Below, piece after piece: positions 27,268 to 32,664 of a stretch of 64,000 nt of DNA. Each line of letters starts with the position of its first letter. Positions within the stretch are counted from its first letter, which is position 1. Under the pieces are notes generated by a model. The model was not told where the DNA came from. It did not search any database and was given only the letters and a program-made list of their open reading frames with translations. Both the position numbers and the translations under genes were made by a program. Source of the stretch: Corallochytrium limacisporum Hawaii (lineage: Eukaryota; Protista; Pluriformea); NCBI GenBank assembly GCA_002811645.1, contig PDIP01000064.1, positions 208,763-272,762 on the forward strand, in the 5' to 3' direction.

Positions 27268-30200
27268 ATGGCCGATTTCCAGGCAAAACAGAAAGCCATC
27301 GCTGGCGTTGACGACATGGTTTTGTTGTCCAACGTCAACGAAAAGGCGATTCTAGAGAACTTGAAGAAGAGGCACTTTGCGAAGCTCATGTTTTGCTACA
27401 TTGGACCTGTGTTGGTAGCCGTCAACCCGTTCCAACAGTTGCCCTACTTCACGGACAGGGAGGTCGATCAGTACCAGGGCATTCCGCCACACGAGAATCC
27501 TCCGCATATTTACGCTGTGGCCGACAGCATGTTTCGCAATATGTTGATTGACCGGGAGAACCAGTGCGTCATCATTTCGGGTGAGTCAGGCGCGGGTAAG
27601 ACCGTCAGCGCCAAGTTCATCATGAACTACCTGGCCCAGGTTTCCGGGGGCGGTGGCGATGCTCAGCACGTCAAGAGCGTCGTGCTGGAATCTAACCCCC
27701 TGCTCGAGGCCTTTGGTAACGCTAAGACCCTCCGCAACAACAATTCAAGTCGATTTGGCAAGTACTTTGAGATTGGTTTCAGCGTAGCCGGCGCCCCGAA
27801 TGGTGGTAAGATCAACCAGTTCCTGCTGGAAAAAAGCCGTGTGGTTGGTGTGCAGAAGGGTGAACGTACTTTCCACATTTTCTACCAGCTGTCCAAGGGT
27901 GCCAGCCCGCAACAACGTGAAGTGCTGGGCGTGGACGGTAAGATGGACTACTTCCGCTACCTGGCCCAGAGCACTTGCTATGATGCGGATGGTATTGATG
28001 ATGTGAAGGAATTCCAGGACACTCAGCGGGCAATGGGTGTTATGGGCATTGATGATGGCACTCAGATGGAAATTCTGAAGATCGTGGCCGGTATTCTGCA
28101 TTTGGGTAACATTACGTTCATTGAGGATGGAAACAACGCCCAGGTGGCGGACATGGGCTTCCTCGATTTCCCTGCCTACCTGCTGGGCATTGACTCCCAG
28201 TCCCTGAACGCCAAGCTCACCACCCGCAGAATCGAGACCCGCTCAGCTGGTCGCCGTAACTCTATCTACGATTCTCCCTTGAACGTTGAGCAGGCTGGTT
28301 TCACTCGTGATGCCCTCGCCAAAGCTGTATACGCGCGCATGTTTGACTGGCTGATCGAGGCTGTCAACCGTGCCCTGGGCAACCACAACTTTGACTTGAG
28401 CATCGGTGTGCTGGATATCTACGGTTTCGAGATTTTCGACAAGAATGGTTTTGAACAGTTTTGCATTAACTTTGTGAACGAGAAGTTACAGCAGATTTTC
28501 ATCGAACTGACCCTGAAGCAGGAGCAGGAAGAGTATAACCGGGAAGGCATCAAGTGGACGCCCATCGACTACTTCAACAACAAGATTGTGTGCGATCTGA
28601 TTGAGGGCAAGAGCCCACCGGGTCTTTCGCTTATTCTGGATGACGTGTGCAAGACCATGCACGCCCAGTCAGATGGCGCCGATATCAAGTTTGTTCAAAA
28701 AGCTTCCATGGGTGTGCCCAACAACCCACGCTTCCAGACCCTGAACACTGGCTTTGTGATTCAGCACTACGCCGGAAATGTAACCTATGAGGCTGATGGA
28801 TTTGTCGAGAAGAACCGTGACACCCTGTACAAGGACCTCGTTGAGCTCATGCAAATGTCCCAGAGCACGTTCATCCGCAACCTGTTCCCAGACGTACTTG
28901 ACGACGACAAGAAGACGAAGATTACCTTTGGTACGAAGATTCGTCGCCAGGCCAATGAATTGGTCGAGACACTGATGAAGGCCCAACCGTCCTACATCCG
29001 TTGCATCAAGCCCAACGATACGTTGAAGCCTGGAGACTTTGAGGACCGGCGCGTGAGTCATCAGATCAAGTATCTCGGTCTTAAGGAGAATATCCGTGTT
29101 CGCCGTGCCGGGTTTGCGTACCGCCCCTTCTTTGACAAATTCCTTCGCCGCTATGCCATCTTGTCAAACCGTACCTTCCCGTACTGGACCGGTGATCCCA
29201 TCGAGGGATGCAAGATAATTCTCACTGCGGCTAACATGGACCCGGCGGAGTGGCAGATCGGTAAGACCAAGCTATTCGTTAAGTCTCCGGAATCCCTCTT
29301 CATGCTCGAAGAGCTGCGTGAGCGCAAGTACAACGGGTATGCTAAGAAGATTCAGCGGGCCTGGCGTCGGTGGAACAATGAGAAGTACTACCTGGAGCTG
29401 CGCCAGAAGGCACTCACAGTGCTCGGTGGTCGCAAACAGAGGCATCGCAACACAATCAACCGCTTCTTCGTGTCTGACTATATTGGCTACATGGACAACA
29501 AGGTCTTGCAGTCGTTCGTGGGCAAGAAGGAACGAGTTGGCTTCGCTGACAAGGTCACACTGTACGACAAGAAGTTCCAAACCAGTAAGGCTGATCTGAT
29601 GATCGGTGAGCGCATCGTTTACATTGTCGGTCTGGAGAAGGCCAAGGAAGGTCCCAACAAAGGCAAACTGCAACGTGTTCTGAAGCACAAGCTGGCATGC
29701 ACGGGCATTGCGTCCATTGACATTTCGACGCGGCCCGACGGATTCATCTTGATCCACCCGGTCAATCCCGACCCCAAACACCCAGTCTACGACATTTTGC
29801 TGGAGAGTGTTTTCAAGACAGAGTTTCTGGTCGTCCTCACCGAGGTGTTCCAGAAGGCCCTGCAACGCAATCCTCCGCTCAATTTCACTGACAACATGGA
29901 GATGAGTGTTAAGAAGAAGCTGCTGGACCGCAGTGGCAAGCGTGCGATTACCTTTGTTGCGGGATCGATGCCCAACGCCGTGGTCAGGTCCCACGGCACG
30001 AAGGGCGCAACTATTGAAGTTGCGGACGGGCTGCCCGCCGATTCCAAGCCCACCCGTAACCGCCGCCCGGCCAAGGAACGCAAGGCCGAGGACCGCTTCC
30101 AAGGTGGTGCTCCGCCTCCGGAGGTCAACTACTACCAGCAGCGTATGCAGCAGCAGCAGCAGCAGCCCCAGCCTCATCGCCCGGCGGCACCCATGGCTGC

Positions 30201-30726
30201 CGCCGCCGCTGCACACCAGCCGCCGGCCGCTGCACACCAACCGTCTCCTATGCAGGCCAAGGCACCGACCGGCTCCTCTCAGGATGTCCGTAACGACATT
30301 GCCGCACGCGTCGCGGCCATGGGAGGTATGGGTAGACCCCCACAACAGCTCCAGCAGCAGCAGCAGCAACAGCCTCGCCACCACCACCAACCCGCGGCTA
30401 CGAATGGAGGTCCCCGGGCCGTGCCTGGCGTGACCGCGGGCCAGGGTGGAGGGCGCCTAGCACCGCAGCAAAAGACACCCAATTCGCTTAGCCCAGGCGG
30501 ATCACCTGCCCCGGCGAAGAAGCGCAAGCCTCCGCCGCCCGTGCCCAAACGCCGCACACCGAAGGTCCGCGCGATCTACGACTACGAAGCCCAGGATGCG
30601 GACGAATTGAGCTTCGCCGCCGGAACAGAGATTGAGCTGCGCAAGGAGGACCCGAGCGGCTGGTGGGAAGGCAGGCTGAATGGCAAGGTCGGACTTTTCC
30701 CTGGGAACTACGTAGAGAAGCTCTAG
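27268..30726 (+). CDS. myo1: Long-tailed class I myosin (motor, IQ, TH1, Q/P/A-rich TH2, SH3; MYO1E/F-like)
   Basis: GVDDMVLL, P-loop [58 protein letters not shown] motif KIQRAWRR and SH3 AIYDYEA...GWWEG...[10 protein letters not shown]. Confidence 0.98.
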
Positions 30727-30928
30727 ACATCCAAGCCAAAGGATGCAGATTCATAAGAGGAGTGCGACGTCAGGGAACAAGTCGGAAGAAATCACACCGC
30801 ACAAAATGAGAACGAAATCAATCCCCTAACTTTCATCTGTAACTTACAGTTATAGGATGACCGTAAGAATATATAAAATGCACTTTGTCTAAAGCAATAA
30901 TGATGTTATTGTCTATGTGTGGTTGCAC

Positions 30929-32044
30929 TTAGCGTGACACAGCGCCGTCAGGAGGGCTACCATCGTTGGCTGCATCGTTGCAGATTTCCCTTCCGAGCGC
31001 ATCGTTACCCGGTGTGCCGAGCTCATACTGGCAGTAATTGACCGAAAATTCTGAAAATTGGGAGAACTGCTGCAAGCGCTTCGCGTAACCGGCAACGGGA
31101 TTCTCGCTGGTTAACTTATGGGCGTTGCCGTATAACCAGTTACTAAATATGTTGAGAACGAATTTCTTGGGCCGGAACACATCCACCACCCGCGCAATCA
31201 GGTCATCGTAGTTCTTCATGTGGATGTTGCACTCAAAGCTGACGTAAGAGAAGTCATCCTGTGGTGTTACGTGGATGGTGAAGTAAACCTCATCTTTGAT
31301 AGCGTTTGCCGAGTAGCCGCATGGCTCAAACAGTACGTCATCCAGTTTGGCACCGGGAAGGATATCTGCAATGCCAGATTTGATGGTTACTTGGCGAGCG
31401 GTCATTTCATGGCCCTTGATCTTTCCATCTGTTTGTCCTGGCGCGGCTTGTGACTTGTAGAACTGTTGCATCTTCTCGGGGTCCAGCTCACTCATGAGCA
31501 GCTCGAAGCTGACATCTGCCTCCGCGAATTCCCGTTCGACCTTATCCAGTGTGTAAAGGTACCAAGTATCCTTGTTGACCTTACCCAGAGAGTAGCCCGC
31601 GCCGTGCTTAAAGTATTGATCCAGGTAATTCACTTCATATTCAAACTGTCGATGAGGCTCCAGCTGTGCCTCCGGTCGCAGGAAGGCTGCGCGACTGTAG
31701 AATATGTCGAGTACATCAGTGATGCCGCACTCCTCTTTGGCCAGTTCCAGCAATTTGGGCACGCAGTAGAGCAGTGTGGTTGTGCCGCAGGTCTTGAGAA
31801 TAACCCGATTACGGCTCACAAACAGACTGCTCTCACTCAGAACGTAAGCATCGTAGTAATCATTGTGAATACTACTCAAGATCGTACATTTCGCATTCTC
31901 CAAGAACACCTGCCAACGGTCCTTGGTGATTTGACGCAGGCCATCTTCACCTCTTGTGTGCGTAGATCCATCCGGGGTTTTGAACCAAACTTCCAAGAGC
32001 TTTTCGCGACCTTCAAAAAATTCGTGTTCCTCGTTCGAGGCCAT
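30929..32044 (-). CDS. AMD1: S-adenosylmethionine decarboxylase proenzyme (eukaryotic AdoMetDC)
   Basis: FFEGREKLLEVWF, self-cleavage site YVLSE|SSLFV, LKTCGTT, FEPCGYSAN and TIHVTPQDDFSYVSFE. Confidence 0.98.
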   Translation of the reverse strand: MASNEEHEFFEGREKLLEVWFKTPDGSTHTRGEDGLRQITKDRWQVFLENAKCTILSSIHNDYYDAYVLSESSLFVSRNRVILKTCGTTTLLYCVPKLLELAKEECGITDVLDIFYSRAAFLRPEAQLEPHRQFEYEVNYLDQYFKHGAGYSLGKVNKDTWYLYTLDKVEREFAEADVSFELLMSELDPEKMQQFYKSQAAPGQTDGKIKGHEMTARQVTIKSGIADILPGAKLDDVLFEPCGYSANAIKDEVYFTIHVTPQDDFSYVSFECNIHMKNYDDLIARVVDVFRPKKFVLNIFSNWLYGNAHKLTSENPVAGYAKRLQQFSQFSEFSVNYCQYELGTPGNDALGREICNDAANDGSPPDGAVSR

Positions 32045-32110
32045 TGTGTTCCGTGCTGTATACTAAACAAACGATGCTGTCTGCAAATTATGGGTTCCTT
32101 CCGCGGAGTT

Positions 32111-32116
32111 TTACAT
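32111..32116 (-). promoter_or_regulatory. Minimal AUG-UAA uORF in the AdoMetDC leader
   Basis: The minus strand reads gcatATGTAAaac. It is in the same frame as MEGS* and the main ORF, with a weak context. Confidence 0.4.
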
Positions 32117-32134
32117 ATGCTTCGACTCGGGATG

Positions 32135-32149
32135 TCAGGAGCCCTCCAT
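32135..32149 (-). promoter_or_regulatory. uORF MEGS* in the AdoMetDC leader, ending in an antizyme-type UCC-UGA +1 shift site
   Basis: The minus strand reads ccgccacaATG GAG GGC TCC TGA C, a strong Kozak context (-3 A, +4 G). It sits 105 nt upstream of the AdoMetDC ATG, and the +1 frame is open from 32136 to the stop ending at 31876. Confidence 0.75.
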
Positions 32150-32177
32150 TGTGGCGGTTGGTCAATAGGAACTTTTA

Positions 32178-32183
32178 TTTATA
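32178..32183 (-). promoter_or_regulatory. Candidate TATA box of the AdoMetDC gene
   Basis: The minus strand reads gatTATAAAtaaaag, about 30 nt upstream of the uORF AUG. Confidence 0.45.
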
Positions 32184-32590
32184 ATCGCCGGGTTGTCACT
32201 GAATTCTCTAATTCTTGTTGTCTTCTTCTCCGAAAAAAGATTTATTTTAGGCACCAGTTCCCAAATACCCGCATTATGGCAACAGATCAAGGTGTACCTG
32301 AAGTTTACCATTTATTTGCCATAGATGGTGACTCCGTGAAGCACCATAGTACGCCAGGAAGGTTTTCACAAACGGCCACTTTCAGTCCGTGACATCCCTG
32401 TATGAGAGCTCCTCTTCGCCAACCCACAATACACACAAGCGGTTGACCATTTTTCAGAAACCCACCCGCTTAGTGTTGTCACTTACTCGCACGTTCAAAT
32501 CATGGCACACAAATAACACACAGGCCCACAGTAACGATTGTCTTTCTATCCGCAAAAGGAAGGAAAGGAGTGCCTACTGCCACAGTGTGT

Positions 32591-32592
<2 letters not shown>

Positions 32593-32664
<72 letters not shown>
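32593..32664. repeat. (GT)36 microsatellite
   Basis: Directly visible, upstream of the AdoMetDC promoter. Confidence 0.99.

Follow-up and report, generated by a model that had tools for sequence, protein, structure and literature searches.

Polyamine-responsive uORFs are well known in AdoMetDC mRNAs, where they have several origins (PMC2811004). In vertebrate AMD1 a short 5'-proximal uORF of six codons encodes MAGDIS, with Asp-Ile ahead of the terminal serine, and polyamines induce stalling at its stop codon (PMC2811004, PMC4505036). Plant AdoMetDC leaders carry a tiny and a small uORF, of which the very short first permits reinitiation and the second is conserved, AUG-initiated and has a penultimate proline (PMC2811004); a 2010 review gives a penultimate proline as the rule for AdoMetDC uORFs, vertebrates and sea squirts excepted (PMC2811004). 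The uORFs of ODC, AZIN1 and yeast HOL1, also of the polyamine pathway, have weak or non-AUG starts and end in Pro-Ser-stop (PMC2811004, PMC10855120), and inhibition by this class is linked to eIF5A (PMC10855120).

ODC antizymes use a +1 shift, usually at UCC-UGA plus a pyrimidine, which leads from an ORF1 of 17-86 codons into the frame of the product (PMC1874602); of termination contexts, UGA with C after it is the weakest (PMC1874602). For a fungal antizyme, shifting is 0.4-3% without module A or other stimulators versus 38% with the full cassette (PMC4505036). The nearest published case to a uORF that bypasses its gene by frameshifting is C. elegans zip-2, for which a regulatory +1 shift between an upstream, overlapping ORF and the main ORF has been proposed (PMC11831180).

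We analysed a stretch of 64,000 nucleotides (the window) from Corallochytrium limacisporum, whose published genome is 24.1 Mb with a reduced intron content (PMC5560861). The AdoMetDC gene in the window is single copy by a search of the assembly (24.1 Mb in 286 contigs), and its product has its highest identity, 57%, to a Syssomonas multiformis protein, with which it groups in a tree with a support of 94. A convergent, intronless class I myosin gene with a C-terminal SH3-like domain lies at window positions 27268-30726 on the plus strand; the two stop codons are about 200 nt apart, and both probable RNA contigs covering AdoMetDC terminate at 30917. The features of the locus are as follows, in window positions.

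30917-32199, minus strand: span common to two probable transcript contigs, one of which reaches 32518; the RNA nature of the runs is presumed
32173-32183, minus strand: candidate TATA-like, AT-rich element, from the sequence, 34 nt before the uORF start codon (uAUG)
32135-32149, minus strand: uORF Met-Glu-Gly-Ser-stop (AUG-GAG-GGC-UCC-UGA-C), four codons with a strong start context
32135-32140, minus strand: UCC-UGA (Ser-stop) followed by CA, a putative slow-termination ending and candidate +1 shift site
32128-32132, minus strand: UCCCG, beginning 3 nt past the stop, matching 4/5 of the antizyme 3' element UCCCU (PMC1874602)
32111-32116, minus strand: start-stop element AUG-UAA in frame 0, in a 3rd-percentile context, absent from the earlier note
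32045-32134, minus strand: spacer of 90 nt from the uORF stop to the main AUG, a reinitiation distance, with no structure and with three of six strain differences
31876-32136, minus strand: +1 frame of 86 codons and a stop, without an AUG start, covering the first 56 AdoMetDC codons
30929-32044, minus strand: S-adenosylmethionine decarboxylase (AdoMetDC) gene, 371 aa, intronless (PF01536, E=4.7e-116)

The uORF and its frames had been described in an earlier note on this DNA, and every sequence fact given there holds on re-checking. The uAUG at 32149 (minus strand) has the context CCGCCACA-AUG-G, which falls at the 87th percentile of the 63 main-gene start contexts examined in the same genome, and the uORF stop UGA occupies 32137-32135 (minus strand). 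The AdoMetDC AUG at 32044 (minus strand) is in the frame of the uORF itself, and this frame contains UGA, UAA and UAG ahead of the main AUG; frame +2 is shut at a UAA. The +1 frame, which has no AUG ahead of the main start, is the only one free of both stops and AUGs up to that point, in both available strains. It runs over the main AUG out of frame and stops at 31878-31876, and by this layout a shifted ribosome would indeed clear the AdoMetDC start, as had been claimed.

The uORF very probably belongs to the AdoMetDC mRNA, in agreement with the premise of the earlier note. Two probable RNA assemblies (30917-32518 and 30917-32199) span it without an intron or joints and continue past the uAUG by 50 nt or more on the upstream side; contig ends do not locate the cap. 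The second assembly is from another strain with six differences, none of which lies in the uORF, shuts the +1 frame or alters AdoMetDC, and three of the four that fall within the +1 frame change the +1 peptide. Given the TATA-like element 34 nt before the uAUG, transcription may start very near the uAUG; TATAWA had no positional enrichment among 55 genes of the same genome, and the inference of a start site from this element was dropped for lack of such a peak. The contig reaching 32518 would take in seven more upstream AUGs, which suggests a minor longer leader, and a (CA)n microsatellite is located at window positions 32593-32664, about 440 nt upstream of the uORF.

Compared with the systems above, the window uORF resembles both the MAGDIS uORF and an antizyme site, yet it lacks the stalling residues of the one and the module A and functional ORF2 of the other. 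It shares with MAGDIS the gene, a short 5'-proximal position and the Ser-stop, but it has four codons rather than six and no Asp-Ile, and polyamine-dependent repression at termination is for the window uORF a prediction only. A derivation from MAGDIS by a 4-nt insert was rejected: Asp-Ile following the +1 shift is also found in 12 of 30 other Ser-UGA uORFs, and it arises automatically from UGA-CAU, so no homology to MAGDIS is shown. The uORF may nonetheless work as a MAGDIS-type termination control, though not as a MAGDIS orthologue. With the plant pair it shares a very short first uORF that could permit reinitiation, but the conserved, AUG-initiated inhibitory second uORF with its penultimate proline is absent, the only AUG downstream in the leader being that of the AUG-UAA element. 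It is like the Pro-Ser-stop uORFs in its Ser-stop and its pathway, and differs from them in its strong start and in having no proline. The antizyme site has in common with it UCC-UGA plus a pyrimidine and an open +1 frame after the stop, and possibly a 3' element, UCCCU being matched at 4/5 positions; the window uORF is much shorter than an antizyme ORF1, however, and has neither module A nor a 3' structure, and whereas an antizyme shift makes a product, the +1 frame here encodes no known protein and shifting would subtract. The proposed zip-2 shift, triggered by elongation stress, turns the main ORF on by leading ribosomes into it, whereas a shift at the window site would lead them off the path to the main ORF.

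Chance expectations were taken from 63 long-ORF genes in 264 kb of this genome, with starts called mechanically. A UCC-UGA ending is present in one of 143 other upstream ORFs in this background, versus 19 of 103 AdoMetDC uORFs, and Ser-stop endings as a whole account for 10 of 144 background upstream ORFs. An open +1 frame throughout the 92 nt preceding the main AUG occurs in 10 of the 63 genes (16%), and over the spacer in 19% of shuffles of this spacer, while a further 55 open +1 codons within the coding sequence have P = 0.59-0.70 given the AdoMetDC amino-acid sequence and codon usage. Openness is thus common by chance, and the length of the +1 ORF is unremarkable; as a signature of selection it was discarded, because the AdoMetDC amino-acid sequence accounts for it. 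The UCC-UGA ending calls for explanation and the long open frame mostly does not. Matches to AUG..UCC-UGA-YNYCC in any frame number about 100 genome-wide, and strong short upstream ORFs occur in the genomic DNA before genes (18 among the 63). Searches with the +1 peptide gave no homologue and no Pfam match, and no stalling motif was found in it; a functional +1 protein was rejected on the missing homologue and Pfam match together with strain changes that are mostly non-synonymous.

The AdoMetDC leaders of relatives were compared in a sample of 80 loci from metagenomes and metatranscriptomes, with further loci retrieved individually (an initial metagenome scan using a single AdoMetDC protein as query had returned no matches). 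Leaders of at least 80 nt numbered 77; those of P0005, P0030 and P0150 were too short, and the sample does not include the Syssomonas leader. A Ser-stop closes 46 of 103 uORFs, spread over 44 of the 77 leaders, counts that overstate independence because the sampled loci are kin. The Ser codon and stop pairs (n = 45) comprise 19 UCC-UGA, 7 AGC-UGA, 6 UCC-UAG and 13 others, and CA or UA follows directly in 30 of the 45. This free exchange of Ser codons and stops shows conservation of the residue and of a poor termination context, rather than of a slippery codon or shift site. In the 19 uORFs with UCC-UGA, the +1 frame is mostly shut within 25 codons and takes a random register (7/6/6) to that of the main ORF; just three of these frames, each with a gap in the range of 6-42 nt, extend beyond the main AUG out of frame. 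As UCC-UGA-CA is the commonest ending of the AdoMetDC uORFs whose +1 frame shuts early, no frameshift is needed to explain it; the comparison suggests that it serves mainly to slow termination and is in wide use, as the ending of MAGDIS does.

The window uORF has both the Ser-stop and the CA after it, in an AdoMetDC leader, but it lacks the Asp or Gly followed by Ile, Tyr or Phe that precedes the final serine of the stalling peptides. Of the 46 Ser-stop uORFs, 30 place I, Y or F directly ahead of the Ser and none places G there, as against G in the window uORF (E-G-S), and the uORFs of relatives are mostly of 16-35 codons with poor starts, a strong context being present in only two of 46. With its glycine, its four codons and its strong start, the window uORF does not fit the stalling family well. 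Typical endings among the relatives, after U-rich poor starts, are G-I/Y/F-S-stop and D-I-S-stop; an amoebozoan and a brown alga are members of the clades concerned. These protist uORFs lie 6-60 nt ahead of the main AUG, and their end resembles that of vertebrate MAGDIS (L015, L024, L027, L030, L032, L033, L036, L037, L039, L044, L046, L047, L051, L052, L054, L056, L058, L061, L064, L067, L069, L072-L074, L078 and L080). The class falls outside the penultimate-proline rule and is possibly undescribed, literature coverage being partial.

A conserved AUG..UCC-UGA with an open +1 frame across the main AUG, which the earlier note had put forward as a check, was missing from every readable leader of a relative. 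Among unicellular holozoans (Capsaspora, Salpingoeca, Sphaeroforma, and ichthyosporean and choanoflagellate-like transcripts), no leader has this layout. The Sphaeroforma leader contains a uORF with Ser-UAG-CA, and several relatives' leaders have no Ser-stop uORF. Two choanoflagellate-like transcripts (L004:84-146 and L091:129-191) contain a two-codon uORF, MN-stop or MS-stop, whose UGA is followed by U-AUG; L091 reads AUG-UCC-UGA-U, its relative L004 has AAC at the same codon, and a small +1 uORF is kept in both. The U-AUG starts this conserved 17-codon uORF (MSWP..G...NPCR.KVR-stop), giving a pair like the plant tiny and small uORFs outside plants. In seven invertebrate leaders (L011, L012, L017, L021, L035, L065, L095) a short first uORF lies ahead of a uORF ending Pro-Pro-stop. 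In L021 the first of these encodes MIDS with UCC-UGA, and its +1 frame is continuous and in frame with the RPP-stop uORF; the idea that animals conserve a shift into an inhibitory uORF was rejected, as the frame relations in L011, L012, L017 and L095 differ from those in L021.

The likeness of the site to that of antizymes, as the earlier note had it, is borne out. Scored against the published UGG-UGC-UCC-UGA 12-mer and 3' UCCCU element (maximum 17; PMC1874602), the window site reaches 13, the organism's own antizyme 14 and the 19 other AdoMetDC UCC-UGA endings 7-12, so that the window site ranks first of 20. This is the strongest point in favour of the frameshift, though no more than a first rank among 20. 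Both the shift-prone last codon with its stop, UCC-UGA, and a weak termination nucleotide after it (UGA-C) are present, and the 4/5 match to UCCCU is equalled in the own antizyme and reached by two of 45 other Ser-stop uORFs. The 5' module A (UGG-UGC-like) is absent, GAG-GGC matching 3/6 without UGG (UGG-UAU of the own antizyme matches 4/6), and there is no conserved functional +1 product such as antizymes have. Folding with a tool whose model leaves out pseudoknots gave no 3' structure (z = 0.87 and 0.06), a feature that not all antizyme sites have, and an Rfam search of the site gave no match; a 3' stimulator was rejected on these two results, although the own antizyme is likewise without structure or Rfam match. 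If a fraction f of ribosomes is diverted, repression is 1/(1-f)-fold, that is 1.03-fold at 3% and 1.6-fold at 38%, or 1.01- to 1.6-fold overall. A shift that creates a product can turn a small fraction into a large fold change, whereas one that removes ribosomes yields only 1/(1-f) and hence a weak OFF switch; for diversion by itself to be a strong switch, the efficiency of shifting would have to be exceptional, or ribosomes that have shifted would have to obstruct others as well.

The genome encodes one ODC antizyme, in which a 54-codon ORF1 ends UGG-UAU-UCC-UGA-U and the PF02100 domain lies in the +1 frame.

L001:1180-1776 (G000:C234, about 131790-132390), plus strand: canonical ODC antizyme with ORF2, containing PF02100, in the +1 frame

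It is thus very likely that this cell uses UCC-UGA shifting. The single ODC gene has a 29-codon uORF in poor context ending FFPREPS-stop (L003:1174-1263, G000:C22), which is like the PP..PS-stop uORFs, or upstream conserved coding region, of animal ODC and AZIN (PMC2811004), and this ending makes uORF control of the polyamine pathway plausible in this genome. The ODC uORF frame is open further upstream and a non-AUG start is possible. Two PF01564 genes (L117, L118) encode a spermidine synthase and a longer, spermine-synthase-like protein, and inspection of translated frames revealed no comparable UCC-UGA uORF at either.

The window uORF is probably a polyamine-related control element. Our tentative first choice, which falls a little short of probable, is that polyamine-slowed termination controls reinitiation at AdoMetDC, with minor +1 leakage. 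The strong uAUG would capture nearly all scanning ribosomes, which would translate its four codons, and AdoMetDC would then be made mostly by reinitiation 90 nt downstream, as context, length and spacing suggest; in one tested mRNA, reinitiation is favoured by a spacing of 79-140 nt (PMC10275272). By comparison with the many AdoMetDC uORFs that share it, Ser-UGA-CA would be an inefficient termination context. At high polyamines, by analogy with MAGDIS and the Pro-Ser-stop uORFs, termination at the uORF stop would slow, and the waiting ribosome would block loading and scanning and lose its competence to reinitiate, such that AdoMetDC would drop. Because the site is antizyme-like, a few paused ribosomes would probably slip +1 and be lost into the overlapping frame, a by-product that would add to repression rather than act as the switch. 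The uORF is unchanged between the two strains and lies under the probable RNA contigs. Against this reading stand the poor fit to the stalling family set out above and an antizyme score higher than those of all 19 other UCC-UGA endings. Stalling and shifting share one cause in these readings, slow termination at the Ser-stop.

A polyamine-stimulated +1 shift at UCC-UGA could instead be the main switch, with ribosomes bypassing the AdoMetDC AUG and unable to reinitiate there, an ATF4-like layout that would be entered by a shift rather than a second AUG. We consider this unlikely, as we do the arrangement it implies, in which Corallochytrium would have converted its slow-terminating AdoMetDC uORF into an antizyme-like shift site, and frameshifting in cis would be an OFF switch answering the very signal that, in this cell, also turns the antizyme on. 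The site's score above all 19 other AdoMetDC UCC-UGA endings, the UCC-UGA and +1 ORF2 of the resident antizyme, and the freedom of the +1 frame alone from stops and AUGs in both strains argue for it, and a strong start, a very short length and the lack of the stalling family's I/Y/F are in keeping with a permissive uORF. No description of a frameshift-bypass uORF in polyamine genes was found in the literature, which was covered in part, as the earlier note had said of the arrangement. However, module A and a 3' structure are missing and Rfam gives no match (the own antizyme, too, has neither structure nor match), stimulator-less cassettes shift at the low rates cited above (PMC4505036) and diversion gives at most 1.6-fold, the open +1 frame is close to chance, the layout is found in no sampled holozoan leader, and few UCC-UGA uORFs (three of 19, at short gaps) pass the main AUG in +1. 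Of the antizyme-style OFF switch claimed earlier, the site likeness, the bypass geometry and the presence of a canonical antizyme stand, and conservation, stimulators and the weak 1/(1-f) effect go against it.

There may also be no polyamine response, the uORF being a constitutive dampener or largely skipped, which we regard as rather improbable; skipping, itself doubtful, could follow if the main transcription start were a few nucleotides before the uAUG, about 30 nt past the TATA-like element. That element, the commonness of strong short upstream ORFs before genes here, the roughly 100 similar motifs genome-wide and the several relatives without a Ser-stop uORF are consistent with this, but UCC-UGA is rare by chance (1/143) and yet typical of AdoMetDC uORFs, both probable RNA contigs run on for 50 nt or more ahead of the uAUG, and TATAWA has no positional peak. 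Least probable of those we considered, and distinctly so, is a plant-type switch in which MEGS-stop is the permissive tiny uORF and polyamines shift start choice to an inhibitory start, for which the AUG-UAA at 32116 and a near-cognate AUC or AUA of the +1 frame are both remote candidates. Plant AdoMetDC has such a pair (PMC2811004), animal leaders also show uORF pairs, and in L004 and L091 a two-codon uORF is followed by U-AUG into a +1 uORF, at a position that corresponds to UGA-C-AUC in the window. Against it, no AUG occurs in the +1 frame of the window and no homologue of the +1 peptide was found, the second AUG is in a 3rd-percentile context and encodes nothing, and AUN after UGA-C is automatic from the common CAU context. 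The feature is real and probably regulatory, and as its mechanism a termination stall is tentatively favoured over a frameshift.

Both readings are testable, since stable transfection of C. limacisporum has been published (bioRxiv 10.1101/2020.11.12.379420). If the stall reading is true, the window uORF would be a minimal, four-codon polyamine sensor without the known stalling residues, and would test whether a Ser-stop and its context alone suffice; uORF stalling and antizyme shifting would then be linked as alternative results of a single event, slow termination. If the frameshift reading is true, it would represent a new regulatory logic in which recoding removes ribosomes from a gene.
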